From NCBI GenBank assembly GCA_964036045.1, contig OZ038379.1, positions 14,570,001 to 14,634,000 on the forward strand: a stretch of 64,000 nucleotides of DNA. The letters are read 5' to 3'. This document shows positions 1,977-32,450 of the stretch, in pieces (the first letter of the stretch is position 1; each line of letters begins with the position of its first letter). The DNA is from Eutreptiella sp. 'Long Island Sound 2002' (taxonomy: Eukaryota; Protista; Euglenida). A program made the translations under genes and the position numbers. The notes under the pieces are model-generated. The model was given only the letters and a program-made list of their open reading frames with translations, ran no database searches and was not told where the DNA came from.

Positions 1977-2796
1977 CCCCGCGTTTCCAACAATGCCACC
2001 GGTGATTGGCGTACTCTGTTCCCCTTAAGCCGAATTCCAGGAATGACTCCAACCATGGCGATCCGGAAGGGCACATGATGGGCGACCTGCGACGACCTGT
2101 GGACCCATAGTCACGGAGCCACCTCGCCCATTTTGCGGAGTACGGGCCCAGTTCTCGCTGAACAACCTTGTCACCGTTCTTGTTGCATCTGAACCATATA
2201 GCCTCGTCCTCGATTCCGCGTCGTCGAACCCCGGCCGCCTCCCCCACCCGCCACAGACAGGTGAAGGAGAGGACGGCCAAGGCGAACCCGGACCACTGCT
2301 CCTTGGTTCGACAGGATTGGGCAAGTACGGACAGTGCCTCCAGTCCTCCATACGGTCGCTGCTCCTCCGTGTTTCGGATGGTGGACTTCGCCATGCGCCA
2401 ATGCCTGGCCTGGACCACCCCAGCGATCCATCCCGAGTCCTCCAGGGCCCGTACCGCGCTGATAGCCCCTCGCATGTATGACCTCGACCTGCCCTTGGCG
2501 AAGAGCGCACATAAGTATCGGTCCAGCAATTTTGACTTATCGACATCCGGCTGCGAGGCTGCGAGTGTCCCCAATGCCCGGATGTGAACGGCATAGTTGC
2601 TTCTGGTGCCAACGCTTCATGACATGGCGACAAGCGCGTTGGAATACTCTGCCGGGTCCTGTCGATTGAGTCGCTTCCACGCCGCCCACCACGATGACCA
2701 GTCTGCCGACTCTCCCAGTACTCCCTCCACCTCTCCCGACGGCGTCTCACCGACTGTCCCCCTCTCCTCCTGTTCTTCCCCCCCTTTTGGGTACCG
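1480..2796 (-). pseudogene. Tyrosine recombinase (YR) ORF with one in-frame TGA at 2617-2619
   Basis: ORF 1480-2574 contains LWRVGEA (catalytic R), NK (K), HCWKRGGA (HxxR) and WGRWKSRRVAEDY (W and Y nucleophile). The frame continues upstream past a TGA as SWWAAWKRLNRQDPAEYSNALVAMS*SVGTRSNY. Confidence 0.9.
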
Positions 2797-4523
2797 TCAC
2801 TCGTAGTATGGGCAGGCAAAAAACCAATGCTTCTTGCCCGGCGCTCCATGGCTCTTGCACGTGCGGCAACCCGTAGCCGGCGGATCCGTCATGTCGGTCC
2901 TCTGCTGATTATTGTTCTTCGGGATCCAAATCCTACGCCCGTTCTCGTACGAGAACCTGCTCCGCAGGCTAGCCAGACGGCACGGACTTCCTCCACAGGG
3001 ACCGTAGTGTCCCCAAAATTTTCTGGCGGCTCTCCCACTTCCTTTGGGGTCTCACCCCCACGCCCACCTCCGGAGTGCTGATGGTATGATTCTCCGTACG
3101 TCCCCATCGCCGATACCAGCAGGATCCACAGCCCCTCCACGTAATTGGCCACCAAGGCCGGAATCGGGGGGGTCCCCCCACCGTCCGACCCATCCATGGG
3201 GGCGGTCACGGCCTCCAGCCAAGCTCCGGAGGTCCAGACCTCTTTGTTCTGAGCCTTCTCTGGAGACATAACCAACTCTTCTTGGAGGTCAGACGATTTC
3301 CAGGCTGAGGTGCACTCCATCAGTTGGGGATCCACCTTTTGCCCGTCCAGGACGGCCTTAAAAAATACCAATAAACGGCATACCCACTGCGGTTTATGAT
3401 CCATCTCCATCAAAATGGATAGCTCCTTGTGGCTCAACTTGGGGATCTTTCTGGTGGGCTCACTCTTCCCCAGCTGCACCTCCTCCAACCGCTGCTCCAA
3501 CATCTCCAGCTTTTTCATGACCTCGCTGATACCACTCTGCGACTGCTCGTTGTTCTCCTCCACCGCCTTAGCAAAATTACCCGTATCCACGTCGAATCGC
3601 AGGTCCTCCAACAGGCAATAACACGCTATGTACTCCACCAACTCCACCGTTGTGAGCTCCAGCCCATGCGCCTTGACAGCCTTCTCCACCCACTCTTCCT
3701 TTCGATCACCCAACCTGTTAAGGTCAGTCTGGATCTCCATGCGTAGCCTCATAAAATCCTTCTGAGGCGCCACAAGGCTCCATTGGGCGTGCAGCCCCAA
3801 CTGCGAATACTCCCGGAAAGAGATCATCTTCTTTCCTTTTCCTTTATCCTTCTTCACAGCCTTGGCCCCCGACGGGGTGCCCTCCCGCGCAGTACCCTTG
3901 CGCTCCTCCTCCTCCCGCAAGGCCTCCTCGATTTCGTTTGGGGTAGCAAAACCAGGGTGCATACCCCCAACCCCACGCATACGCACCTGCACATGACTCC
4001 CGCTCTGGGGCACCTTCATGTCGTCCGCGAGGGCACGCCCCTCGCACAACATCCAAAAATCGTCGTCGCCACAGCCCCACAGCCTGACAACTGCACAGCG
4101 CAGCTGGCGTGCGCCTTCGCAGGGAACCTGCACCCAACCCCGCGGGCCTTGTAACCAAACGTGGGGGGGGGCCGGGGCGCGTGGCCGATCCGCCCGTGGC
4201 AGAACCATCACCCCGTCCCCCTGAGCTAACCCCCCTGGTTCGGCCAAAGATTGACCGTTGTGTTTGCTTGGGACACCAAGGGGGGTCGCCCAAGGTTCAA
4301 GGGATCCGGCGTCCAGATGCCGCGTCCCGGCGATCCCCGTCCCCCTCTTGCCACGGCGTAGGGCTTCACTCAGCTCAACCGATTGCCCGGCCTCTGACCC
4401 GCTGGCCGGTTTCCCCCCAACATGTGCTCCTCCGGGCTTGCCCTGTCGAGGCACCAGCCCACGGGGCAATTGGAAAGCATTCCCCATCGACATACAAAAT
4501 ATAAAAGACAACTGACCGGACAA
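2025..4523 (-). pseudogene. Gag-like ORF1 with N-terminal ubiquitin-like domain; in-frame TGA at 2889-2891
   Basis: 544-aa ORF 2889-4523 with charged coiled-coil segments (EIEEALREEEERK, MKKLEMLEQRLEEV). ORF 2025-2849 is in the same frame 13 codons later and has an Arg/Gly-rich tail (GGKNRRRGGQSVRRRRERW). The Gag call rests on position and composition. Confidence 0.65.
3963..4163 (-). other. Ubiquitin-like domain ending in di-glycine within ORF1
   Basis: HVWLQGPRGWVQV...FWMLCEGRALADDMKVPQSGSHVQVRMRGVGG|MHPG resembles the ubiquitin C-terminal half LIFAGKQLEDG...STLHLVLRLRGG. GG is at 3963-3968 and is followed directly by Met. Confidence 0.6.
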
Positions 4524-4587
4524 TCAGTGCAGACACATATACAATCTTGCACAGACCAAACTTGGGTTTGCTTATGGCAAACCTCAT

Positions 4588-4776
4588 ATTGAGAGTCCCT
4601 AACCCCAACTCAAGGGGCCACGCATCAAAGCATGGATTGCGAGTCCCTAACCCCAACTCAAGGAGCCACGCATCAAAGCGTGGATTGAGAGTCCCTAACT
4701 CCAACTCAAGGGGCCACGCAACAAAGCGTGGATTGTGAGTCCCTAACCCCAACTTAAGGGGCCACGCAACAAAGCG
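4588..4776. repeat. 48-bp tandem repeat, about 4 copies
   Basis: Unit ATTGAGAGTCCCTAACCCCAACTCAAGGGGCCACGCATCAAAGCATGG starts at 4588, 4636, 4684 and 4732; each unit contains CCCTAAC. Confidence 0.95.
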
Positions 4777-4822
4777 GGGGAGTAAAAAAAAAAGAGGAAA
4801 GAAAGTGGGAGGCAAAATTTCA

Positions 4823-5215
4823 TTCTCGGGGATCCCCAACAAAGGGGAGCAGAATCAGAAGTGGCTGCCTCACACCTGCCTTCTCGGGGGCCCAAAAACG
4901 GGCGGAAATGCTACGGCACCCCTGCATTCTCGGGGATCCCCAACATAGGGGAACAAAATCAGAAGTGGTTGCCTCCCCCCCGTGCCTTCTCAAGGGCTCA
5001 AAAGAGGGCGGAAGTGCTATGTCACCCCTGCGTTCTCGGGGGTCCCCTACATAAGGGGACGGAAACAAAAGTGGCCCACAAAAGGGCGGAAGTGCTATGT
5101 CCCCCCTAAGTTCTCGGGGGTCCCCGCAAAAGGGGACAAAGTCAAAGGTGGCCCACAAGTGGGCGGAAGTGCTATGTTACCCCTAAGTTCTCGGGGGTCC
5201 CCGAAAAGGGGTTCA
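4823..5215. repeat. Compound tandem repeat (46-78-bp units beginning TTCTCGGGG)
   Basis: About seven units start TTCTCGGGG or TTCTCAAGG; GGGCGGAAGTGCTATGT recurs near 4900, 5007, 5085 and 5161. Confidence 0.85.
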
Positions 5216-5979
5216 AAAATGGCCGGCGTCGGGCTCCTGGAAAAAATCCCATAGTGGGGGTCCTTAAGGGCGGTCCTTAGAAAAAAAAAAAGGTCCTAAA
5301 TGACCACCCTGCGCTTGGCTAGCCGCACATTGCGGGCACCAACACTATGTGTTCTAGCATGTTTGGTGTGTGTCTCACGGTGTGGTGTGTGGCCCGTGCA
5401 TCTCGCTTTGGGTCTGCGTGGGTTTCTTGATCTGTGTTAGGTGTGGCGCGCCATGCCACCAGCCTTGCGGTTTGATGTCCCGTTGTAGTTGTGTGGGCGC
5501 GACGTGTCAACACCCACAAAGATTGCGACGAAGCAATGCCCGTATAGCATTGGATTGATAGGACAATTGCATTGTTGCTGCCCTCATACGGAATGCCGTT
5601 CACGCAGTGTGCATACATTGCGGGCGTGTGTGCACAGTGCAAGCAAAGCGGACAAGAACTCATATACAACTCATATAAATGCATAACAAGGCTCATTGTT
5701 ACAGGTACTAGGCACTACTATGTAGGTTGGGCATGGTCCTGTACAAATTTTGTGCAGAGCGCGCACACAGCGCGCAAACCACCCCCATTGCACACACCGT
5801 GCAAACTTTTACATGTTGGCAACTAGGTGAACCCTAGTTTTGGCCCTTTTCTACAAGTTACCAGGTTTTTTTTTCCGGGTGTAAAGGGGGAGTGTTAGCG
5901 TGCCGGGCGCGTGCCGGGCATATTTTTGTACCATTCCACACCTGTGTTTTTTTTTCCCACCCTCACCAAATAATCTGCC

Positions 5980-19537: not shown

Positions 19538-22500
19538 TCATTGACCGCAGGCGAGCGCGAGCTGTGCTGCACAAAAGCCAGCCTCCTTCAATTTCGTAGT
19601 AGCAAAACCCACTTCCTTGAGCTGCCAGGCATAAAAACCAGCCTCCTTGAGCTCCCAAGCGTTGAAGCCCGCCTGCTTCAATTGCTTGCAACCAAACCCA
19701 GCCCCCGTCAGCTGTGCAGCATCATAGCATGCAATCTTTAGCAGTGCCGCACTAAATCCGGCATCTTTCAACTCCGCCGCATCAAAGCCTGCCTCTTTCA
19801 GCTGCAGTGCATCATAGCCAGCCAAGCGGAGCTTCACGGCATTGAAGCCAGCTTCCTTCAACTGTGTGGCATCAAAGCCGGCCTCTTTGAGCCTATCCAC
19901 ATCGTGGCCAGCCCACGCGAGCTGCGCAGCGTGGCAGCCAGCTTCCTTTAACTGCACGGCACTGAAGCCAGCCTCCGTCAGCTGGACAGCATCATGCCCC
20001 ACAGTCTTGAGTTGCATAGCATTGAACCCGGCGTCCTTCAACTGTGCGGCATCAAAGGCAGCCTCTTTGAGTTGGCTGGCGTTAAACCCACCCTCCTTCA
20101 ACTGCACAGCATTGAAGCCCACCATCTTGAGCTGCATAGCATGAAAGCCTGCCTTCTTCATCTCTGCAGTGCTGAGGCCAGCCGCCTTCAGCTGCTTAGC
20201 AGTATAGCCAGCCATCTTGAGCTGCACGGCACAAAAGCCAGCCATGCTCAAGTGCGTGGCATCAAACCCAGCCCGCTTCAGCTGTGTGGCATTGTAGCCG
20301 GCCTCCTGCAGCTGTTCAGCAGTGAAACCGGCGGCAGCAAGCTGCGCGGCACTGAAGAGCCCCTTCAAATCTGTGGCAGCAAATCCAGCCTCCTTCAGCT
20401 GCACTGCAGCATAGCCAAGCGTACGGAGCTGTGCAACGTCGAAGTCAGCGTTCTTCAGCTCGGTAGCATCAAAGCCAGCGTCGTTGAGTTGCACTGCATA
20501 ATAGCCAGCCACTTTGAGCTGTGCAGCATTAAACCCGATCTCCTTCAACTCTGCAGCATCGAAGCCAACCTCCTTGAGTTGCACAGCGTCGTAGCCGACC
20601 AATTTGAGCTGCGCAGCGCTGAACCCAGCCTCCTTCAACTCTGTGACACAAAAGCCTTCGTTTCTTAGCTGCTCAGCAGAATAGCCAGCTAACTTGAGAT
20701 CCCAAGCGCTGAACCCTGCCTCCTTCAACTGCGTGGCATCTAAGCCTCCCTCCTTCAACTGTGCAGCAGTATAGCCAGTCAACCTGAGCTGTGTACTTTC
20801 GAAGCCAGCCTCCTTCAGCTGTGTGGCATCAAAACCAGCTTCCTTCAACTGCCAGGCATAAAACCCCACCTCCTTCAGCTGTCTGGCATCAACTCCAGCT
20901 TCCTTAAAATGTTTGGCGCCGAAGCCTGCCTCCACGAGCTGCGCAACATCATAACCAGCCAACCTAAGCTGCGCAAAAGTGAAGCCTGCGTCGGCCAACT
21001 CCGCAGCATAATGGCCAACCTCTTTCAGCTGGGCAGCATCATGACCTCCCGACTTGAGCTCAACAACGCTGAAGCCTGCCTTTTTCAGTTGCGCAACATC
21101 AAAGCCAACATTCCTCAGCTGTTCAGCACTGTACCCAGCCAACTTGAGCTGCATGGCGTCAAAGCCAGCCTCCACCAGCTGCGTGAAGTTCAAGCCAGCC
21201 TCCTTGAGCTCAGTTGCTTCAAAGCCTGCCTCCTTGAGCTGAGTGGCATCAAGGCCAATCTCCTTTAACTGCACAGCATTATAGCCAGCCTGCTGGAGCT
21301 GCGCGGTGCTGAAACCAGCCTTCTTCAACTGCGCGGCACCAAAGCCAGCCTCTTTCAGCTGCGCAACAGCAAAGCCAACCTTCGCAAGCTGCACAGCGTC
21401 AAATCCTGCCCCCTTCAGTTTTGCAGCATCAAAGCCAGACTCCTTCAGCTCTGCAGCATCAAATCCAATCAACATCAGCTGTGCAGCATCAAAGCCAGCA
21501 TCCTTCAACTGTGCTACACCAAAGCCAGCCTCTTTCAGTTGGGTGGCATCAAACCAAGCTTCCTGCAGCTGCACAGCGCTGTAGCCAACCATCTTGAGCT
21601 GCACGGCGTCAAAGCCAGCCTGCCTCATCTGCGGGGCATGGAAGCCAGCCTCCTTTAGCAGTGCAGCATCATAACCAGCCAACTTGAGATTCATGGCATT
21701 GCAGCCGGCGGCTTTCAGCTCTATGGCATCAAAACCTGCCTGCTTCAACTCTGTGGCGCTATAGCCAGCGTCCTTCAGCGGTATGGCTGCAAACCCCCCC
21801 GTCTGCAACTGCGCGGCGCTAAAGCCAGCCCTCTTCAACTGTGTTGCATCAAAACCAGCCTCCTTCAGCTGCGCAGCGTCACAACCAAGCGTTTTGAGCT
21901 GCATTGCGCTGAACCCAGCCTCCTTCAACTCCGTGGCACTCGTGGCATCAAGGAAGCTGGACTCGTCTGTATCCCTGTTCGACTGGGAAGCCCCAAGGCC
22001 AGCCTCGTGCAATTCCATGGCGTTGGCAGCCAACATCAGCTGTGCAACATGGAAACTGGACTGCTTCACCTGTGTGGCATCAAAGCCTGCCTCCTCGAGC
22101 TGTGCGACCTTAAGCCCAGCCAATCTCAGCTGTACAGCGTCGAAGCCAGCCTCCTTCAGTTGTGTGGCATCAAAGCCTTCTTCCTGGAGCTGGGCCGCCT
22201 GAAACCCAGCCAATCTCAGCTGTACAACATCGAAGCCAGCCTCCTTCAGTTGTGTGGCATCAAAGCCTTCCTCCTTCAGCTGTTCCGCCTTAAACCCAGC
22301 CAATCTCAGCTGTACAGCGTCAAAGCCAGCCTCCTTCAGCTGCCAAGAATCAAACCCAACCTCTTTCAGCTGCCAGGCGTGAAATCCAGCCTCCTTTAGC
22401 TCCCATGCATGAAACCCAGCATCCTTCAACTGCCTGCAACCAACGCCTGCCTCCGTTAGCGGTGCAACACCATAACCAGCCACCCTTAGTTGCGCTGTGC

Positions 22501-25500
22501 TGAACCCAGCCTGCCTCAACTGGGTGATGGCAAAGCCTGCCTCCTTCAGGTGTGCAGCATAATAACCCGCGGCCTTGAGCTGCACAGCATTAAAGCCTGC
22601 ATCCTTCAGCTGAGTGGCATCAAAGCCTGCCTCCTTCAGCTTGGGAGCTTGAAACCAGAGTTTGAGCTGGATAGCATCAAAGCCAGCCTCCTTTAGTTGC
22701 ACAGCAGTATAGCCAACCATCTTGAGAACCGCGGTACCAAAACCAGCCTCCTTCAACTGTGTGGCATCAAAGCCAGCCTCCTTCAACTGTGTGGCAACAA
22801 AGCCTGCCTCCTTCAACTGTGTGGCATCAAAGCCAGCCTCCTTCAATTGTGTGGCGTCAACGCCTGCCTCCTTCAGCTGTATGACATCAAAGCCTGCCTC
22901 CTTCAACTGGACAGTATCAAAGCCAGCGTCCACCAGGAGTGCAGCAGCATAGCCAACCAGCTTGAGATGCACTGCACTAAAGCCTACCTCCTTCAATTGT
23001 GTGGCATCAAAGCCTGCCTCCTCCAACTGTGTGCACTCAAAACCAGCCTCCTTCAGCTGTGTGGCATCAAAGCCTTCCTCCTTCAGCTGTGCCGCCTTAA
23101 ACCCAGCCGATCTCAGCTGTACAGCGTCAAAGCCAGCCTCCTTCAGCTCCCATGCATGAAACCCAGCATCCTTCAACTGCCTGCAACCAACGCCTGCCTC
23201 CGTTAGCGGTGCAACACCATAACCAGCCACCCTTAGTTGCGCTGTGCTGAACCCAGCCTGCCTCAACTGGGTGATGGCAAAGCCTGCCTCCTTCAGGTGT
23301 GCAGCAAAATAACCCGCGGCCTTGAGCTGCACAGCATTAAAGCCTGCATCCTTCAGCTGAGTGGCATCAAAGCCTGCCTCCTTCAGCTTGGGAGCTTGAA
23401 ACCAGAGTTTGAGCTGGATAGCATCAAAGCCAGCCTCCTTTAGTTGCACAGCAGTATAGCCAACCATCTTGAGAACCGCGGTACCAAAACCAGCCTCCTT
23501 CAACTGTGTGGCATCAAAGCCAGCCTCCTTCAACTGTGTGGCAACAAAGCCTGCCTCCTTCAACTGTGTGGCATCAAAGCCAGCCTCCTTCAATTGTGTG
23601 GCGTCAACGCCTGCCTCCTTCAGCTGTATGACATCAAAGCCTGCCTCCTTCAACTGGACAGCATCAAAGCCAGCGTCCACCAGGAGTGCAGCAGCATAGC
23701 CAACCAGCTTGAGATGCGCTGCACTAAAGCCTACCTCCTTCAATTGTGTGGCATCAAAGCCTGCCTCCTCCAACTGTGTGCACTCAAAACCAGCCTCCTT
23801 CAGCTGTGTGGCATCAAAGCCTTCCTCCTTCAGCTGTGCCGCCTTAAACCCAGCCAATCTCAGCTGTACAGCGTCAAAGCCAGCCTCCTTCAGCTCCCAT
23901 GCATGAAACCCAGCATCCTTCAACTGCCTGCAACCAACGCCTGCCTCCGTTAGCGGTGCAACACCATAACCAGCCACCCTTAGTTGCGCTGTGCTGAACC
24001 CAGCCTGCCTCAACTGGGTGATGGCAAAGCCTGCCTCCTTCAGGTGTGCAGCATAATAACCCGCGGCCTTGAGCTGCACAGCATTAAAGCCTGCCTCCTT
24101 CAAGTGTGTGGCATCAAAGCCTGCCTCCTTCAACTGAGTGGCATCAAAGCCTGCCTCCTTCAACTGAGTTCCGTCAAAGCCTGCCTCCTTCAATTGTATG
24201 GCGTCAAAGCCTGCCTCCTTCAACGGAGTGGCATCAAAGCCTGCCTCCTTCAACTGAGTGGCATCAACGCCTGCATCCTTCAGCTGTGCGGGATCAAAGC
24301 CTGCCTCCTTCAGGTGCATGACATCAGAGCCTGCCTCCTTCAAATGTGTGGCATCAAAGCCTGCATCCTTCGACTGTATGGCATGAAAACCAGCCTCCTT
24401 GAACTGAGTGGCATCAAAGCCTGCCTCCTTCAACTGTGGGACATTGAACCCAGCCTCCTGCAGCTCAGCAGCCTCCAAACCCGCCTCCTTCAGCTGTGTA
24501 GCATCATGGCAAACCAACTGAAGCTGCATGGCGGAAACGCGCTCCTCCTTTAACTGTGTGGCATCAAAGCCTGGCAGCTTAATTCGCATGTTGTCAACGC
24601 CTGCCTCCTCCAGCTGCGTGGCATCAAAGCCTGCTTCTTTGAACTGTGTGGCATGAAAGCCTGCCTCCTTCAGCTGTGCGGCACCAAAGCCTGCCAGCAC
24701 TAATTGCGTGGCCTCAACGCCTGCCTCCTTCAGCTGCCTGGCATCAAAGCCTGCCTCCTTCAGCTGTGCGGCACCAAAGCCTGCCAGCACTAATTGCGTG
24801 GCCTCAACGCCTGCCTTGTTCAGCTGCGTGGCATCAAAGCCAGCTGTCTTCAGCTGCACGCCGCTGAAGCCTGCCTCCTTCAACTCCATAGCATCAAAGC
24901 CGGCCTTCTTCAGCTCCGCAGCTTGATACCCAGCCGTCTTGAACTGTGTAGCGCAGAAACCCATCTTTTTAAGCTGCGTGGTCTCAAAGCCAGCGGACTG
25001 CAGTTGTGTGATACCATAGCCGGCATCCCTGATTGCTGACAGAGTGTTAAAGTGGGTCAGGTCCAGCGCCATGCCGTGAAAGCCAGCATCCTTCAGCTGC
25101 CCCACATTGAAGCCAGCCTCTTTCAGATGCCAGATATTAAAACCAGCCGCCTTAATTAGCATGGCGCTCAAACCAGCGTGCTTGAACTGATGTGCACGAA
25201 ACCCAACAGCCTGGAGATCAGCAGCGGAGAAGCCAGCATGCAGCAATTGGGGAATGTCGAACTCTTGGGCCTTCAGCTCTTCGGCCGAAGCGCCCAAAGC
25301 CCTCCGCCGGCACGCCTCCGAGTACCGCAATGCTTCGGCACGCCGTGCGTGAAGGATATCCGTCGCACCTTCGAATGCTTCCGGCCAATCGAAAGTGCCC
25401 CGGGTAACCTCATGATGCAACTGCATGAAACGCTTTTCGTCCTCCAAGCGTCTGGGTATCAGCTGTTGCTCAACCACGATGCCACTGGCAGGCCCCATGG

Positions 25501-28042
25501 ATAACTTCAGCCAAGCCTTCACACCTCTGTGGCCCGTGGCATCTGCTGTGCTGCTGCGGTTGAACCCATTTTCCATGCGCACCATCTCTACCCCGGCGGA
25601 TGCATCGCGCAACCGTTGCAGAACAGCCCGCAGCTCCGCCATGTCGTTCACCACCAAGGCGCACCCATTGATATCAAGCACATATGACGCCGCTTGCCGC
25701 AAAAGCGCGCGCGCCGCTGTTGCTGCCCCATTCGCACCGGCGACACGGAACTCCTTGCCAAACGCTTCCCATACTGCTGACACCCTGTCCCGAATCCAAG
25801 CGGGATCTTTGGCATTGCTCCACACATGAAAGTTCTCGGCTGAAGCGCTCGGCCCTAAAACGTCTCGAACTCGACGGTACACTTCTTCCTCCTGCAGCCG
25901 GCAGACTCCACACAGCCAAGCACCAAGCCACTGGGCACAGCCGCGATCGCCCTCATTCACGGCGGAATCCGAGCCATCCGAAGCGGCCAACTGCAAGAAA
26001 TCGGTGACCGTGCCCATCCCCCGGTCCACGACGGCCCCCACCCTCTGCAGATCTCGAAACGTCTCGCCCATATCACAGCGGTGGAGCCATCCCGGGGCTT
26101 CCACGCCACACCGCACGCCTCCGTTGGGCAGCCGTTCCGAGAGCACGCCCGCTTCTGCGTGCAGGTCCTGCACGGCCGCGTCCTGGGCCACGAAATCCGG
26201 CTCCTCCTTCGCCCACTCCGCATCCTCCCCGGCCAACTCCTCACAGAACTGGGCCGCTCGGCCCGCGCTCATCGCCTCGGCCACGCACGCCACACGGAAC
26301 AGGGGGGTCCGGTAGGGCCCCCGGGGGTCGAGCCCGGGGCAGCGAGGCCCCTTCGTGGCCGACAGCAACTCCCGCAGCACCTCCGGGGCCATGGGCTCGC
26401 GGGCCTCCGCCGCCCGGAACGCCCGGTGCAGGGCCCGCCACACCACCGACAGCCGCTGCTGAGAGCGCTTCGTGTGGCCGCCCCGCGCCCACACGCGGTC
26501 CTCCCCGAAGCAGTGGAACGCCACCAGCTCCTTCCAGAGCCCCGGCGGCGCCACACGCTGCAGCGCGGCCCAGGCGTCGCCCAGGGTCTCCTGCTCCAGC
26601 GCGGTCTGCAGCGCCGTCCACGAGGCCATGTGCCCTTCGACGAGGATCGCAAACCCCTTGCGGCCGCTGAGGCGCATGGCCGCGCTGACCCCGTCGCCGT
26701 CGAGCCGCAGGATCGAGGCCACGTCCAGCCGCTCCGCCTGCAGGAGCAGCCGCAGGAGCCGGTACGCCTCCGCCGCGTTGTGCCGCGCCAGGGCGTTGAG
26801 GGGGACCTGCCGCGCGGAGTTCGCCACGGCCTGGGCCTCGGGGGCCCGCCGCAGCAGCAGCTCGGCGCACCGCGCGTCCGCCGCGTGATGCGCGGCCACG
26901 TTCCCGGCCCCGTCCCGCTGCAGGAACGCCCGGCGCGGCAGCGCGTCCAGGCGCTGCGGCTGGAGAGCGGAAACGTCGGCCCGTTTGGCGGCGGCAAAGA
27001 GGCTGCTGACCTCCCCCATCAGGGCCCCGGCCGTCGTGCCCAGGACCACCTCGAGCTCGAAAACGGCCCCGGCTTCGACGGAGACCTCTTGGAAATGCGC
27101 GTTGCGCAGCAACGCCTCCTTCTCCGGCTGCGGCATCACATCCAATTCCGCCAACGATCGGAACCCGAGCAAAGACCGCAGCTCGAAGCGCGCGCGCGAC
27201 CGGCCAAGCTGCCGTTGCCCCACCGCCCGGGCCGTATCGTCGTCGATCTCGAACGCCAGGCGGCATTCCACCCCTTCGCTGCGGGCGAAGTGGAGCGCGT
27301 CGACCATAGCACTGACGTCGGCCCGCGCCCGGTTGCACCCCACGAGCCTCCATCCCCTTTGGATCTGAACAAAGGCTTTGCCTGCCTCGTCGGTCTCTAC
27401 CATGACTCGTGGACCTTCGCAGACCTCGACTACGATGCCACTCGCACCGTCAAGGCGAAAGCCCAGATGCTCCGACGGCAGGTACACCTCGATCAGATTG
27501 CACCTGCGGTCACTGAGGCCACGGGCGGACAGTTGCCCATCACAAAGGCACGGGGCAGGGTCACGGAAAGCCTCCCCCGCGGCTGGGGCAGCGATGTTGT
27601 CCGAACTCACTGACGGCCCGGTATCCAGTAGAAGTTCTGATAACGCTCGGACTACGTTCGGGTTTTCAGGGTCGTGGGCCGCCCGCAGTGCCAGGGAATC
27701 CTGACGGGTCGCTTGGCCTCCAAGGGAGCCGATTTGCGAGCCCTGCCGTGATGGAGGGAGCAGGGAGGGGGCAAGCAGTGATGAAGTGGCTAGGAATGAG
27801 GACTGGGTGCTGGAGTGGGACTCTACCAATACTGCGGATAAGGGGCGCGGAAACTTGTAGTTCCCGAGCACTGTCCCGAGCACTCCGGCCGCTTGCATGC
27901 ATTCGGATGGCGGGGCAAGGTGTGGCAACAGGGAGCGCCAAAGGCAGCCGCTGGGCTGGGCTGTGTGCGAGCCCTCTGGGTCGATGAAGCAGTCTGGAGC
28001 GCGTGACTGCAGTGCAATCTCAGGGGCTGACTGGTACCTCAT
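19538..28042 (-). CDS. 2834-aa intron-free protein: PDZ-like, ankyrin-like and RelA/SpoT-like NTase regions, then about 190 decapeptide repeats
   Basis: 8.5-kb frame without a stop. PDZ-like LIEVYLPSEHLGFRL...VQIQRGWRLVGCN (about 27250-27500). Ankyrin-like RDGAGNVAAHHA...ANSARQVPLNALA (about 26740-26930). RelA/SpoT-like AKDPAWIRDRV / LDINGC / VRMENGF / GHRG / VVEQQL / HHEVTRG (about 25400-25830). The true start codon and any upstream exons are unknown. Confidence 0.88.
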   Translation of the reverse strand: MRYQSAPEIALQSRAPDCFIDPEGSHTAQPSGCLWRSLLPHLAPPSECMQAAGVLGTVLGNYKFPRPLSAVLVESHSSTQSSFLATSSLLAPSLLPPSRQGSQIGSLGGQATRQDSLALRAAHDPENPNVVRALSELLLDTGPSVSSDNIAAPAAGEAFRDPAPCLCDGQLSARGLSDRRCNLIEVYLPSEHLGFRLDGASGIVVEVCEGPRVMVETDEAGKAFVQIQRGWRLVGCNRARADVSAMVDALHFARSEGVECRLAFEIDDDTARAVGQRQLGRSRARFELRSLLGFRSLAELDVMPQPEKEALLRNAHFQEVSVEAGAVFELEVVLGTTAGALMGEVSSLFAAAKRADVSALQPQRLDALPRRAFLQRDGAGNVAAHHAADARCAELLLRRAPEAQAVANSARQVPLNALARHNAAEAYRLLRLLLQAERLDVASILRLDGDGVSAAMRLSGRKGFAILVEGHMASWTALQTALEQETLGDAWAALQRVAPPGLWKELVAFHCFGEDRVWARGGHTKRSQQRLSVVWRALHRAFRAAEAREPMAPEVLRELLSATKGPRCPGLDPRGPYRTPLFRVACVAEAMSAGRAAQFCEELAGEDAEWAKEEPDFVAQDAAVQDLHAEAGVLSERLPNGGVRCGVEAPGWLHRCDMGETFRDLQRVGAVVDRGMGTVTDFLQLAASDGSDSAVNEGDRGCAQWLGAWLCGVCRLQEEEVYRRVRDVLGPSASAENFHVWSNAKDPAWIRDRVSAVWEAFGKEFRVAGANGAATAARALLRQAASYVLDINGCALVVNDMAELRAVLQRLRDASAGVEMVRMENGFNRSSTADATGHRGVKAWLKLSMGPASGIVVEQQLIPRRLEDEKRFMQLHHEVTRGTFDWPEAFEGATDILHARRAEALRYSEACRRRALGASAEELKAQEFDIPQLLHAGFSAADLQAVGFRAHQFKHAGLSAMLIKAAGFNIWHLKEAGFNVGQLKDAGFHGMALDLTHFNTLSAIRDAGYGITQLQSAGFETTQLKKMGFCATQFKTAGYQAAELKKAGFDAMELKEAGFSGVQLKTAGFDATQLNKAGVEATQLVLAGFGAAQLKEAGFDARQLKEAGVEATQLVLAGFGAAQLKEAGFHATQFKEAGFDATQLEEAGVDNMRIKLPGFDATQLKEERVSAMQLQLVCHDATQLKEAGLEAAELQEAGFNVPQLKEAGFDATQFKEAGFHAIQSKDAGFDATHLKEAGSDVMHLKEAGFDPAQLKDAGVDATQLKEAGFDATPLKEAGFDAIQLKEAGFDGTQLKEAGFDATQLKEAGFDATHLKEAGFNAVQLKAAGYYAAHLKEAGFAITQLRQAGFSTAQLRVAGYGVAPLTEAGVGCRQLKDAGFHAWELKEAGFDAVQLRLAGFKAAQLKEEGFDATQLKEAGFECTQLEEAGFDATQLKEVGFSAAHLKLVGYAAALLVDAGFDAVQLKEAGFDVIQLKEAGVDATQLKEAGFDATQLKEAGFVATQLKEAGFDATQLKEAGFGTAVLKMVGYTAVQLKEAGFDAIQLKLWFQAPKLKEAGFDATQLKDAGFNAVQLKAAGYFAAHLKEAGFAITQLRQAGFSTAQLRVAGYGVAPLTEAGVGCRQLKDAGFHAWELKEAGFDAVQLRSAGFKAAQLKEEGFDATQLKEAGFECTQLEEAGFDATQLKEVGFSAVHLKLVGYAAALLVDAGFDTVQLKEAGFDVIQLKEAGVDATQLKEAGFDATQLKEAGFVATQLKEAGFDATQLKEAGFGTAVLKMVGYTAVQLKEAGFDAIQLKLWFQAPKLKEAGFDATQLKDAGFNAVQLKAAGYYAAHLKEAGFAITQLRQAGFSTAQLRVAGYGVAPLTEAGVGCRQLKDAGFHAWELKEAGFHAWQLKEVGFDSWQLKEAGFDAVQLRLAGFKAEQLKEEGFDATQLKEAGFDVVQLRLAGFQAAQLQEEGFDATQLKEAGFDAVQLRLAGLKVAQLEEAGFDATQVKQSSFHVAQLMLAANAMELHEAGLGASQSNRDTDESSFLDATSATELKEAGFSAMQLKTLGCDAAQLKEAGFDATQLKRAGFSAAQLQTGGFAAIPLKDAGYSATELKQAGFDAIELKAAGCNAMNLKLAGYDAALLKEAGFHAPQMRQAGFDAVQLKMVGYSAVQLQEAWFDATQLKEAGFGVAQLKDAGFDAAQLMLIGFDAAELKESGFDAAKLKGAGFDAVQLAKVGFAVAQLKEAGFGAAQLKKAGFSTAQLQQAGYNAVQLKEIGLDATQLKEAGFEATELKEAGLNFTQLVEAGFDAMQLKLAGYSAEQLRNVGFDVAQLKKAGFSVVELKSGGHDAAQLKEVGHYAAELADAGFTFAQLRLAGYDVAQLVEAGFGAKHFKEAGVDARQLKEVGFYAWQLKEAGFDATQLKEAGFESTQLRLTGYTAAQLKEGGLDATQLKEAGFSAWDLKLAGYSAEQLRNEGFCVTELKEAGFSAAQLKLVGYDAVQLKEVGFDAAELKEIGFNAAQLKVAGYYAVQLNDAGFDATELKNADFDVAQLRTLGYAAVQLKEAGFAATDLKGLFSAAQLAAAGFTAEQLQEAGYNATQLKRAGFDATHLSMAGFCAVQLKMAGYTAKQLKAAGLSTAEMKKAGFHAMQLKMVGFNAVQLKEGGFNASQLKEAAFDAAQLKDAGFNAMQLKTVGHDAVQLTEAGFSAVQLKEAGCHAAQLAWAGHDVDRLKEAGFDATQLKEAGFNAVKLRLAGYDALQLKEAGFDAAELKDAGFSAALLKIACYDAAQLTGAGFGCKQLKQAGFNAWELKEAGFYAWQLKEVGFATTKLKEAGFCAAQLALACGQ
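19541..25290 (-). repeat. Coding 30-bp (10-aa) tandem array, consensus QLKEAGFDAT, about 190 units
   Basis: Continuous L-x-x-A-G-(F/Y) periodicity with one short break (ASQSNRDTDESSFL, about 21950-22000). Confidence 0.95.
22385..24095 (-). repeat. Higher-order 747-bp (249-aa) duplication within the decapeptide array, about 2.3 copies
   Basis: Near-identical sequence at 22490, 23237 and 23984 (offset 747). The diagnostic 9-aa unit QLKLWFQAPK is present in both full copies. Confidence 0.92.
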
Positions 28043-28822
28043 GTGCAGTCAGCCACAATCTGGTGTGCACCAGAATCAAGAGCTCTCCATACGGCCTACA
28101 AAAGGACAATCAACACAGGAAATTCGGAAACAAGCCACCAGGCACCCTGATTCAAAACATCAAACCCACAGGGTTTCAACTTGGGGTGGGGTTGAGCCGC
28201 ATGCAGGTCAACAAGGCGCTCTACACATGCACGTCCCGGTGTGCACATGCAGCAATGTTTGGCAGTTCTTCCTTCCCATATGTCACTCGAGAGCTCATGA
28301 CTGTATGTGCAGTTAATCCACCTGTGTCTTCCTGATTGTTTCTTTGGTCGACCAAAACAACTAGCCTACATGTCACAATACATGTCCTTTTTTTTGTGTT
28401 CCGGCGCTAGGCCTGTACAGCAGCCCCTCAAGGGGTCCGCGAATGGATATTGGGTCCAGAACCATGTACAGCCTCCATCTTGGGACCGGCGGTTTCACAC
28501 ATATGAGGTTTGTCCCCAAGAAGGACACCACAGGTGGCAAGACTTGGGTGTAGACTGTCACATCTATGCAGCCGCGGCTACCACAATCCCAGTTGAAGAA
28601 CCTAGATCAACACTACTTTCATGAGAGTCCGTTGCCTACTTGAAACCGTTGTGCGTCATCGCTGTTGTCACCACGACACCAGAGTGAAAACCCCTGGTCG
28701 TTCCACTAGTAGCCAAAGTCACAGTCCTACATGCAACGTGTGCCTGCAATCGCTATTGTGCTATCTACAACTGCGCTGTGCGTCAAGGACGGGGACACAT
28801 GTGTGATCTAGGCTAAGTGTTT

Positions 28823-29304
28823 GCACTGCGTGCGCACTGCGTGCATATTGCGCACGCAGAGGCTAGGATACTCACCCAAGAATACCTGTCACCTGTTTAC
28901 TAGGGGGAAGACTGAAAGGTGTCAATACCATAGGGTTGGCCAGGTGTGCATCGAAACTTCTGGTTGTAGTTATAACCAACAGCATCGTCGAAGAAGAACT
29001 GTCCGGTCTTGGTGTCGACTCACCACCATCGAGTATCGGCGATTGAGAGCCTTCGAGCGACGATAACCACGTTGAATTCTTTGCAGTTGTGGACGTGGCC
29101 ATACCGATCAATGATCTTGAGCATCTCGGTTTGAGAATCACCTTGAAGTCGACCAAGGTTTTGGTGCAGGTACTATCTGACGGGAAGAGTACTCTGCAGG
29201 GCGAATCGAACCGCCTCTACAGAGGCTTGTGAAAAGGGGCCAAAACTAGGGTTCGAGTATTTGCCGACATCCAAAACTTCGCACTGCGTGCGCACTGCGT
29301 GCAT
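28823..29304 (-). other. Orphan coding-like fragment between 24-bp perfect direct repeats
   Basis: GCACTGCGTGCGCACTGCGTGCAT at 28823-28846 and 29281-29304. The interior minus frame reads YLHQNLGRLQGDSQTEMLKIIDRYGHVHNCKEFNVVIV...WW*VDTKTGQFFFDDAVGYNYNQKFRC. Confidence 0.4.
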
Positions 29305-30779
29305 GGCATTCCCCTAGATCATGCTGGACACATTCTAGCATGTTTTGGGCGCACGGTGAAGGGAGATACACAGCCTGTTGCGTATGCATTGGTGGCACAA
29401 CCACCGTCCTGCGGGTTTTGTGATTCCTGCCCTCACCTGCCCTGCACGACTGTCAATTCACAATCAGCTTCTTACTGTCAAACGTCTCGGGACAGTCCAT
29501 GTACAGCTCTTCCCAAGAAAAACAAGTATGCACTGTGGACAAAACGTATGTTTTTGGCAAAACATCGGTTCTGTCTGCTGCGACGCGCCGCATCACCGTC
29601 ATGGGCTGCCGGTGAGATGTACGGCATCTTGAGGGTGCCCTGCGGATTGCCGGGTGAGGCTTTTGTCAGCTCGATGTAGCACGGCGACTCCGGCATGGCC
29701 ACGCAACGCCGTGGGCCGTTTCCCCTTCTTTGACATGCGGAGGACTGCCTGATGTGCCGCTTCCAAGAGGCTCCGTGGTCTGACCAATGCGCACGCGGGA
29801 ACTCGCCACTATTTGACCAGATGCGACAGTGAGAGGCAGGCTGTTCAGCGCGGAGGAAGGCGGAAGCGGCTCGGTGATACACCTCAAACGCCTCGGTCCG
29901 TGGTCTCCGCGGCGCGTGCGTGGTGTTCCCCTGCATTCCCTGATGTGCCCGGCACGCATGTCACGCAGGAGTAGAGCACAAACGCCTTGAGATGCAAGGG
30001 ACAGGGAGATATCTTACCCGGCATGCCACCCCCGCCCGCCCTACTCCGACGCACGGAACTTCCAGAACTGCGGAACTACAGTGCATGGAAGCTGCCATCC
30101 ATGAGAGTCTAGTACGGTAGTAGGGCAACATTGCCGCCCACGTCTCAAAGGGTTGGAAGGCAATTTGCAGGTTGTGCAAAGCCAAGTTGCCGAGGGATGA
30201 TATCAGCCGCCTGTGGTCACCATAGCAGTCGGCTGCACGGCAAGCCCACGGAGCGAAGTACCCCCCCCCCCCACTTGTCGTTCCCCACCCCAGGGAAGAC
30301 GGTCCCCCACCACCCCCTAGGGGACAGTTGCCAAGTGACGGGGTGGGGGTGGTCCCCCACCCCCCCACGTGGGGGACCACACCACCACCGTACACGCACA
30401 TTTGCAGGCACAAAAATTGCAGCAAAAAAAGAAAAGCATTCAGCATAGGGTGCAATGTACGGAGACCTACTCCTTGCATGCTCTCCACTTTCCACTGGAA
30501 TGCTTTGGGCAGCACTCTTGGGTGGTGGTTTTGCCTTCTTGGTAGGAGGCTTGGCAGGCACAAGCAGATTTGTGGGTACCCATTTCCCTTCGGGAATGTC
30601 CCTTGTCAAATACAACTTGTTCCCAAAACTGTGTCCCACACCCCATACACCACGGGCACTCTTCACCCATGAACATCACATTTGTCCTAGGGGGAAACAT
30701 GGTTGTGCTGTCAAGTTCCATTTCAGCAAAAGTGAGCAAAATGTCATGCCATGAGTGCAAGGGATACAAGTGGCAGTGC

Positions 30780-32450
30780 CCCACACCATAGTCACCCACA
30801 CAACAACACAATGAGCTGCAACGAAACATTTTGGGTTGACCAAGTGACGTGTGATGGGTAGGAAGGAATCATAGAAGGGAAGTCCCCCGCATAGCAGAGA
30901 GTTTCGCATGGACCAATGTGTTGCTTGCGCCATCCAAGTCGTGATGCCTAGCGGCTAAGAGAAGGAAAGGTGCAGTGGTAGGGTGCGGACTAAGTATGTG
31001 CTGGAGCCCTTGTCAACAGGGTGCCAGCATTTGTCCAGTGTGTCAAAAATCAGCAGATGGAAATTACAGTGGTAGAGTGCATGGTCGAAGGACTCTAAGA
31101 CGCCACATACTAGACAATAAGACACACGCGTCCAAGAGGACAAGCATTCTGCTACTTTGACTTTACGCCAAAGACATTGGTGGACAAAATCGGTGACAAA
31201 CGGGGGAGCCGGGCTTTCCAAAAGGCCTTCCACACCAGTGGTGACCTCCAAGATGTGGTGTGCAGGTGTGGTGCTAGGCGGCGGAGGGTTGCCGCTTTTG
31301 CCCATGCCTCACTCCACACGGAGGGTTTTGACCAATCGGTCGCTGGTACGGACGGGAAATTCTGTATGGACCTCCAGGTGGGTCCCACTTTGGCAAGCAG
31401 ATCTGGTCGGGGCTGATGTTGCTGGTCGAACATGTGACCCACTTTTGTGATACCTTTTGCGATCGGCGCAGGGCACTAATACGTGAGGTGCTTATCTAAC
31501 TTAAAAATCACTGAATGCCACAGGGGGATCTCAGAGAGGGCCTCATGGTTGCTGAGTCCATCAATTATGTAGCGCCGTGCAATAGAGAGAGCCTTTAAAC
31601 TGTACGCTACAAAAGAAAAGGTCTTGTACGGTACTGGGCCTAATTGGAGGTAGGGCAGTAGGGCTTTTTTTTGGGGGGGGGGTCCCAAACAAATTTCCAC
31701 ACAGTGATTGCCCTTGTTGACCCACAACAACATATGTCTAATCACCAGAACAACAGGACTCAAAGAAATTTGGTGTGCTTTGATAGGCTCTAGGAAATGT
31801 CACGAAAGGTGATCTCAGGTGCAAGCACAGGCCAACTGCTCCGCAAATGCAAGCACACCAAACCAATCACGAATCTCTTGAAATTTCTGACCACATGGCC
31901 ATATGACTTCACTGCATATGGCTTAGTTCAACGGCGGTGGCCATGTCAAGGGATAGGGATAGTGCGCCAATGGCTTCCTCGCTCGATTCTCCCAAATGGA
32001 ACAATATGAGCGTGCCATGGATATAATTCAGGTAAATGGAACCATTGAAAGGTTTTGCCAGTTGTGTAGCAGGCAAATCTACCGGTGGTGACCTACTATA
32101 CGTGACTTGGTGAGGTTGATGGTTACAAGTAGCGATTGGGTTACAGAGAAAACCAGCCTCATGGCAGACCAGGTTTGTGTCATCAAATACAGAAGCTCTT
32201 GGCTCCATTGCAAGCAATGAAATTACACTTGAGACAGATTACAGCCTGGTGGGTGGCTGGCTGGTAGCCATGGGAAGGCAACTGGCAATCAAAAGATCAA
32301 CAGCAGTTGGAGGTCTATTAACAGAAACTGGGCGAGACATGTTTTCTTCTTCGTGAGGAAAAGCCCAAGGGTGAGTGTAAGACCAGGGATCAGGGTTAGC
32401 GCCAGCGCCTCCTGCCACCACTCTTCCCCTTGACAACAATGCCAATGCGG
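30780..32450 (-). mobile_element. Degenerate L1/Tx1-like LINE ORF2 remnant (RT end + zf-RVT)
   Basis: PGCNLSQV..AMEP and FDDT (about 32170-32260, like GCPLSPLLF..AMEPL and ADD), YLNYIHG (about 32020-32040), CLVCGVLESFDHALYHCNF (about 31060-31120), and WMAQATHWSMRN (about 30900-30935). Many stops, frameshifts and deletions. Confidence 0.7.

Follow-up and report, generated by a model that had tools for sequence, protein, structure and literature searches.

RelA/SpoT-type synthetases are known in bacteria, in the plastids of plants and algae and at the N-termini of some fungal NLRs; among them, the plant/algal Ca2+-activated RelA/SpoT homologue (CRSH) is a canonical RelA/SpoT homologue (RSH) that is targeted to plastids, carries C-terminal EF-hands and has an HD domain in degenerate form. 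Here we report on a 64,000-nucleotide (nt) stretch of the genome assembly of Eutreptiella sp. 'Long Island Sound 2002' (contig OZ038379.1, positions 14,570,001 to 14,634,000; hereafter the window), in which the minus strand carries a gene for a giant protein of 2834 amino acids (aa). This protein joins an N-terminal core, in which a RelA/SpoT-type nucleotidyltransferase (NTase) domain is accompanied by ankyrin repeats and a helical domain, to a long array of decapeptide repeats, and within a known enzyme superfamily it represents a divergent branch from eukaryotes that stands in a new domain context and is fused to a known repeat at extreme length.

With RelQ and RelP (SAS1/SAS2; PDB 5DED, 6EX0 and 6EWZ) and with the synthetase domain of the long RSH proteins, the window protein is predicted to share the same alpha/beta NTase fold over nearly the whole domain; in the alignment to RelQ/RelP the Asp of DxxG (D790), the G-Y-R-x-L motif (at the level of the family) and E-x-Q (E858 and Q860) coincide. 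It differs from all of them by a sequence identity of 11-15% and by the lack of HD hydrolase, TGS and ACT domains. In comparison to RelQ/RelP, moreover, its NTase domain sits within a eukaryotic core of ankyrin and helical parts, with a repeat rod behind it, the family is devoid of the Arg of DxxGxR, and in the window copy the acceptor-stacking Tyr is missing together with several basic residues. With CRSH the family shares the combination of a RelA/SpoT-type synthetase and EF-hands, as found in the relatives P0005, P0012, P0016 and P0026, whereas the EF-hands of the family are N-terminal, an HD domain is absent, the synthetase is far more divergent and the window protein itself has no EF-hand in a Pfam scan. 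CapRel, one of the toxic small alarmone synthetases (toxSAS), likewise joins a RelA/SpoT-like head (Z 10.4) to a C-terminal non-catalytic region; its tail, however, is a small antitoxin/sensor domain and not a repeat rod. NTPases of the NACHT/NB-ARC (NLR/STAND) kind were absent from Pfam scans of the window protein and of 85 relatives, and no region lies between head and repeats. The protein belongs neither to the canonical RSH proteins nor to the plant-type CRSH, and a central NTPase of the NLR type is absent.

The repeat array has described counterparts of its own. The solved-structure chain closest to it by sequence is Legionella DotG/IcmE (PDB 7MUC, chain 7MUC_AG; E 6.5e-93 over 300 aa of the array, as a comparison of sequence only), the central repeats of which read ELKDAGFSAx as against QLKEAGFDAx here; designed pentapeptide proteins and Nostoc Np275/276 come next. 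DotG is, however, a core protein of the bacterial type IVB secretion system that carries a VirB10/TrbI domain at its C-terminus and has repeats of a few hundred residues (the matches span about 190-740), as opposed to ~1,900 residues of repeat behind an N-terminal head of predicted enzymatic activity in the eukaryotic protein. The copy number of the DotG repeats varies among Legionella species and strains, and in the homologue CagY such variation is credited to intragenic recombination (PMC6761968), to which a 747-nt duplication within the array is comparable. With pentapeptide-repeat proteins (Np275/Np276, 2J8K; designed beta1; the SV2 luminal domain) the array shares the pentapeptide pattern and significant sequence matches, and it is set apart from them by a strict ten-residue super-period and by its length (~385 pentapeptides).

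An uninterrupted gene and its protein family

The open reading frame (ORF) starts with an ATG and, given an in-frame TGA 9 nt 5' of it, cannot extend further 5' within this exon. It lies in the sole open frame: each of the other five is interrupted by 21-137 stops in the array and by 9-18 in the 5'/N-terminal part, of which the non-repetitive 2.7 kb are open in this one frame only. As a stop-free unit propagates, an open frame across a tandem repeat is by itself weak evidence of coding; nevertheless, the entropy at the three codon positions across 182 in-register units (first 0.93, second 0.88, third 1.27; for the Gly codon of the unit 0.31, 0.26 and 1.39) shows an excess of variation at the third, and the irregular segments of the array all measure whole numbers of codons, so that the frame is kept. 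The array is thus coding and not merely repeat-propagated, and its repeats are under purifying selection, with strongly conserved core positions and synonymous variation. Hidden introns in the 735-aa core (aa 176-910) are made unlikely by its collinearity with proteins that derive from transcripts of other species, and DNA contigs of the same organism show no differences to the N-terminal core region of the ORF. The initial annotation, made from the letters of the window, was right in describing a stop-free frame, and no intron was seen in what it had called intron-free: the ORF is a real gene of 8.5 kb without interruption.

Sequencing runs were located using the 5' part of the gene. Two runs of the same organism (X5 and X7) cover genic and unique intergenic DNA at an even depth of 12x and 37x (high-copy repeats reach 10^4-10^5) and on account of this evenness look like DNA; their contigs, with zero differences to the assembly over 25300-28225, confirm the assembly and not expression. 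Two estuary metatranscriptomes (X1 and X2) yielded short contigs, 100% identical to the window and lying within 25300-28103 at a depth of 2-3.5, one of which extends to 61 nt upstream of the ATG; on unique intergenic bins (29634-30027 and 31013-31200) they contain nothing or almost nothing (one bin, depth 0.41). These contigs are consistent with transcription of the gene.

Open frames also run antisense to the GC-rich core-coding part (510 aa at window 26081-27613 on the plus strand, GC content being 69.5% at 26-28 kb; 1032 aa opposite the C20 paralogue introduced below, at 2753-5851, minus, of the C20 locus stretch), and these are most likely a by-product of GC-rich codon usage and not a gene. 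The 3 kb upstream of the gene (28058-31012) consist of very high-copy repeats, with a summed contig depth of 10^3-10^5 in the DNA runs as compared to 12-37 on unique sequence, and contain several joints and variant letters, as is typical of dispersed repeat families. An Rfam scan of the window gave no match.

Searched as a single sequence, the N-terminal ~900 aa of the window protein matched no Pfam family at E<=1 and nothing in the PDB (phmmer), and a word-index protein search found no relative among proteins of 495-1575 aa and only one paralogue (C25, from an ENA assembly) among those of 1559-4960 aa. Within the organism's own 2.28-Gb assembly (chromosome-scale pieces >170 Mb), in which the locus count is a lower bound, we identified three close paralogues (including the window copy) and at least six more distant loci with an NTase-like domain. 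The C25 and C20 paralogues are both open (ORFs of 1900/1907 and 1048 aa) and are 51-53% identical to the window protein over aa ~176-910, and the length of the array differs among the three (about 185 units in the window copy, 95 in C25 and 12 in C20). Among the distant loci with a RelA/SpoT-like domain are C21:1894201, C1:174049987, C24:4720518, C26:15829541 and C4:6179224 (E 1.6e-18 to 3.4e-4); some sit in open frames of 645-1102 aa, and they may be this organism's motif-intact members of the family. At C4:44597986-44598111 there is an isolated stretch of 42 aa with 64% identity to residues 635-676 of the window protein, which could be a piece of a gene or an exon belonging to a further relative.

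An exhaustive profile search, seeded with the alignment of the three paralogues, recovered 86 cluster representatives at the cut-off of E<=0.001 (32 of them at E<=1e-30). The members that carry an organism name all derive from dinoflagellate transcriptomes (Polykrikos kofoidii, Gymnodinium catenatum and Dinoflagellata sp. MGD), the remainder being MMETSP transcripts or ~3-kb contigs, and the transcriptomic origin of the members implies that the family is expressed in several species. The exact 21-nt sequence of the canonical dinoflagellate spliced leader occurs in zero copies in the 2.28-Gb assembly, the few 16-mer matches to it are none of them leader genes, and the window holds no relic of it. 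In a quick maximum-likelihood tree (quick search, SH-aLRT supports, a more careful search being incomplete) the window protein, C25 and C20 group together with full support; their common stem branch is long (0.76), and they are nested in a subclade with P0003 of Polykrikos and the decapeptide-tailed MGD proteins P0005 and P0006. The architectures seen by Pfam vary around the core: P0005 has an EF-hand pair, the core and a Decapeptide match, P0016 EF-hands, the core and 8 Decapeptide matches, P0006 the core and Decapeptide, P0012 an EF-hand and the core, and P0026 an EF-hand, the core and extra ankyrin repeats (across 49 members, Ank_2 was matched in 10, EF-hand in 9 and Decapeptide in 8). By analogy, such a constant core with variable appendages would resemble regulated signalling enzymes. 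A limited literature library, the silence of which is not proof, yielded no description of this architecture; the family is an undescribed protist protein family.

The core and its RelA/SpoT-type domain

The core was modelled from a 40-sequence family alignment (aa 176-910), and the resulting model of all 735 aa (mean predicted local distance difference test, pLDDT, 93.1; predicted template modelling score 0.91) predicts one compact body (Table 1). Whole-core structure searches returned lists filled by matches to ankyrin and NTase domains. The ankyrin-like call of the initial annotation (aa 370-440) is confirmed and extended to aa ~338-515, both by the family profile against the PDB (E 9.5e-24) and by the corresponding part of the model (model residues 163-340; VIA Z 13.3 and a root-mean-square deviation, rmsd, of 2.7 over 125 residues to ankyrin domains). 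Its PDZ-like call (aa 180-270) fared less clearly: the family profile of the small beta domain finds mostly PDZ domains in the PDB (17 of 19 matches), albeit at E 0.09-1, and its language-model (ESM) features place it at 0.95 to a cluster that is 31% PDZ (further PDZ clusters follow), whereas none of 21 beta-domain pieces matched a Pfam PDZ model. A PDZ-like nature of this domain is plausible. The helical middle domain, with its near-invariant motifs HCFGE, GxHTxxS, LLxATKGP, DPRxPYR and AAWLRGxC, has no relatives by PDB profile, no recurrent Pfam family in 34 pieces and no language-model look-alike.

Table 1. Features of the gene in the window (all on the minus strand), with positions in nucleotides of the window and in residues of the protein
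Feature	Window position	Strand	Residues and remarks
Whole ORF	19538..28042	(-)	2834 aa (2834 codons), ~303 kDa, isoelectric point 5.4; stop codon 19538-19540
N-terminal extension	27518..28042	(-)	aa 1-175; poorly conserved among the three paralogues; no family match
Small beta domain	27245..27499	(-)	aa 182-266; five strands, a long helix and a final strand in the model
Helical linker	27038..27241	(-)	aa 268-335; conserved motif AVFELEVLLG
Ankyrin-repeat domain	26498..27031	(-)	aa ~338-515; about four repeats; motif QRDGAGNVAxHH
Helical middle domain	25946..26497	(-)	aa 516-699; family-specific
RelA/SpoT-type NTase domain	25379..25945	(-)	aa 700-888; predicted alarmone-synthetase fold
Decapeptide (double pentapeptide) array	19541..25312	(-)	aa 911-2834; by PF25296, PF13599, unit count and matches to DotG and pentapeptide proteins
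Tandem 747-nt copies in the array	22595..24088	(-)	aa 1319-1567 and 1568-1816; differ at 4 nt
Partial third copy of the 747-nt block	22373-22594	(-)	

The NTase domain, which the initial annotation had placed at aa 735-885 and which we delimit to aa 700-888, is confirmed by structural modelling as a RelA/SpoT-type nucleotidyltransferase fold. Folded alone with AF2 (pLDDT 89.9), it found RelP/RelQ as its best Foldseek matches (E 4.8e-6), and of the 31 matches at E<=0.001 all those listed are RelA/SpoT-family synthetases (RelP, RelQ, an exported SAS and CapRel, with Rel, SpoT, RelA and FaRel2 following at E 1.3e-3 to 3.3e-3). In the VIA comparison it reached Z 13.7 to RelQ 5DED (147 of 189 residues aligned, rmsd 2.8); RelA/SpoT synthetases fill the first 21 rows, and the next family, TdT/Pol mu, stays at Z<=8.9. 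Sequence evidence exists at the level of the family: the four best PDB matches of the family profile are GTP pyrophosphokinases (RelP at E 3e-4), with DIAGIRV, GYRSLH and EIQI of RelP in register with DINGxxV, GYRDLK and VExQL of the family, and PF04607 (RelA_SpoT) is the only recurrent Pfam family among the NTase pieces (7 of 53, weak, best E 8.2e-5). By its predicted structure, the protein belongs to the RelA/SpoT synthetase superfamily, though it has no PF04607 match at E<=1 and lacks the Tyr of the acceptor motif. The initial annotation proposed to judge its domain calls by profile or structural matches to PDZ, ankyrin and RelA_SpoT (PF04607); Pfam gave nothing of these on the window protein, and it is family profiles and structures that match for ankyrin and RelA/SpoT.

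In the active site, D790 aligns with the metal-binding Asp of RelP (D107) and is near-invariant in the family, and E858 (near-invariant as well) and Q860 align with the ExQ of RelP (E174, Q176); all are kept in the window copy, as are K745, N825, R839 and K842. Most members of the family keep the alarmone-synthetase motifs (the Syn1 Lys, the Syn2 Asp, K-N-G-F and G-Y-R-D-L-K of Syn3, E-x-Q of Syn4 and H-x-x-Y of Syn5), and, judged by these motifs, the family as a whole looks like active enzymes.

The decapeptide array

The array consists of 182 in-register decapeptides and 7 irregular segments (consensus QLKEAGFDA[T/A]), in good agreement with the about 190 units counted in the initial annotation, and Tandem Repeats Finder reports periods of 30, 60 and 90 nt. 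Its type is already known: it scores 1993 bits against the Pfam 'Decapeptide repeat region' (PF25296, cut-off 45) and 453.6 bits against Pentapeptide_4 (PF13599, cut-off 38), and it also matches the pentapeptide-built luminal domain of SV2. Each decapeptide can be divided into the pentapeptides AGFDA and TQLKE, in which position i is Phe or Leu and position i-2 a small residue. Since this pattern is the rule of the quadrilateral beta-helix, the array is predicted to fold as a right-handed helix of this kind, and with the geometry known for pentapeptide repeats (each coil taking up 20 residues and 4.8 Å) its ~1,924 residues would form ~96 coils in a rod of ~46 nm. The most variable positions of the unit are the 4th, 8th and 10th. 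The idea that the rod might mimic DNA was set aside, the array being only mildly acidic (net charge -55 over 1924 aa).

The two tandem 747-nt copies differ at just 4 nt, which indicates that the array has grown recently; the 4 differences are all non-synonymous (0 synonymous) and too few to interpret. Between the paralogues, at about 50% amino-acid identity, synonymous sites are saturated. Other loci with decapeptide or pentapeptide arrays were found in the genome on C19 (13.33 and 13.51 Mb), C11 (44.91-44.94 Mb), C1339 and C1995, with open frames of about 530 to 3513 aa in these clusters, and giant repeat rods recur in this genome.

Function and significance

We consider it about an even chance (a probability of roughly 50%) that the family consists of regulated pyrophosphokinases and that the window protein carries an altered or weak enzymatic head on a very long beta-helical rod, which would act as a scaffold or binding surface. 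Since most members keep the synthetase motifs and many carry N-terminal EF-hand pairs, the ancestral job of the family was most likely signalling by pyrophosphate transfer, in which Ca2+- or partner-regulated enzymes would, inside the cell, pass the pyrophosphate of ATP on to an acceptor, either a nucleotide or RNA; Ca2+ may act through the EF-hands, and partners through the ankyrin and PDZ-like parts. The product of the window gene would accordingly be a multidomain protein of this family, probably cytosolic, the core of which (a PDZ-like beta domain, ~4 ankyrin repeats, the helical domain and a RelA/SpoT-type nucleotide pyrophosphokinase domain) would form a single body. The decapeptide tail is common to the closest relatives and has been lengthened here by recent tandem duplication to ~185 units, and we infer that the rod serves the head as a spacer, scaffold or binding surface. 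The head of the window copy may have a changed substrate preference or a weak activity, with the metal-binding D790 and E858 surviving and residues of the ATP and acceptor sites substituted.

Several observations weigh against this interpretation. On its own, the window protein gives no match to the PDZ, Ank and RelA_SpoT models of Pfam up to E<=1, and it keeps 27 of 40 family-conserved NTase positions as compared to 32-39 in typical members. The two family-conserved Arg residues of the Syn1 region are replaced by Trp (R741 and R749), the Lys of RxKNGF in Syn3 by Glu824, the stacking Tyr of GYRDLK in the acceptor site by His838, and the His and Tyr of HLPYE in the last motif by Gln874 and His877, respectively; within Syn3, D840 of the alignment has become Gly as well. 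As a result, the acceptor motif reads GHRGVK (Tyr is present in 92% of the members), and the basic ATP-binding motif RxKxxxSxxxK retains K745 with R753 in place of its Lys. The adenine-stacking Arg of DxxGxR is absent from the whole family. In the C25 paralogue even the catalytic-type Glu has become Gln and the Syn1 Lys has become Thr, and these exchanges fit a relaxed selection on catalysis in this clade. Because several substrate-site residues are lost though D790 and E858 are kept, the window copy may be an altered or an inactive enzyme, and, to judge from the residues retained, the clade of this genome is under relaxed or redirected constraint at the substrate sites. Furthermore, the support for transcription, which the initial annotation had wished to see together with the 5' end, is thin and patchy: the metatranscriptome contigs are identical to the gene and one passes its ATG, but as contigs they show neither ends nor strand, and DNA carry-over is possible.

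These losses lend some weight to a tentative alternative, in which catalysis has been abandoned in this clade and the protein is a pseudoenzyme scaffold, its 46-nm beta-helical rod and protein-binding head (ankyrin, PDZ-like) taking part in, for example, a cytoskeletal, cortical or chromatin-associated assembly. The 13 of 40 family-conserved NTase positions lost in the window copy, the still greater losses in both paralogues (which keep 23 and 21) with the Glu to Gln exchange of C25, the long stem branch common to the three, the ongoing expansion of the rod by the 747-nt duplication and the further giant pentapeptide rods of this genome would all be in keeping with such a role. On the other hand, the window copy still has D790, E858, Q860, K745, N825, R839 and K842, and the paralogues are ~53% identical and free of stops over the entire core with its NTase domain, which argues that the NTase domain remains under constraint; moreover, the decapeptide-tailed relatives P0005, P0006 and P0016 retain 34-36 of 39-40 conserved positions. 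That the gene is non-functional, either as a frame held open by its repeat structure or as a recently dead or unexpressed copy, we regard as highly improbable: a stop-free tandem repeat does propagate an open frame and the transcript support comes from short, low-depth metatranscriptome contigs only, yet the non-repetitive 5' part is open in a single frame, can be aligned over its full length with homologues that are expressed and yields a model of pLDDT 93, the repeats vary in excess at third positions, and the contigs are 100% identical to the gene.

The initial annotation had suggested a sensor-effector of the immune or conflict kind with a diversifying array as its binding surface. In such a system the array would bind a pathogen or viral molecule and thereby switch on a toxic RelA/SpoT-like effector, as in CapRel and other toxSAS. 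The resemblance of the NTase model to the toxic CapRel, Tas1 (Z 10.7) and FaRel2 (Z 8.3), the large differences in array length among the paralogues together with its change by recent duplication, and the variability of unit positions of which two are predicted to face outward are compatible with this idea, but we now hold it to be quite unlikely. The array is a known type of repeat with strongly conserved core positions and synonymous variation, the 4 to 0 ratio of block differences is too small a sample for positive selection, and the search of the 2.28-Gb genome found only three close paralogues and six distant loci (a lower bound); Pfam scans of the window protein revealed no immune hallmark such as a STAND NTPase, a TIR or a death-fold domain. 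The conservation of the family across species, with a fixed core, is what would be expected of housekeeping signalling, and the EF-hands of the relatives point to signalling regulated by Ca2+.

Taken together, the known RelA/SpoT-type synthetases are joined by a well-conserved, expressed, multidomain eukaryotic family built around a highly divergent RelA/SpoT fold, which is accompanied by ankyrin repeats, a family-specific helical domain, EF-hands and rods of pentapeptides. As the substrate-site residues of the window copy are degenerate, it is a less attractive entry point into this family than its motif-intact relatives, among them P0026 and P0033 with 38-39 of 40 conserved positions. The near-identical repeat unit of DotG raises a possible exchange of gene fragments between host-type eukaryotes and Legionellales, which is worth testing since Legionella lives inside protists and the repeat units are so nearly the same. 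We consider it somewhat unlikely that these proteins are the enzymes of a hitherto unrecognised non-plastid pathway of nucleotide second messengers or RNA modification in dinoflagellate-type protists, in which pyrophosphokinases would be switched by Ca2+ (members with EF-hands) or by rod-bound ligands (the window protein) as a eukaryotic cytosolic counterpart of alarmone/toxSAS signalling. If any member is active, however, its activity would raise the question of alarmone-like nucleotides, or of RNA pyrophosphorylation, in the cytosol of major marine protists.

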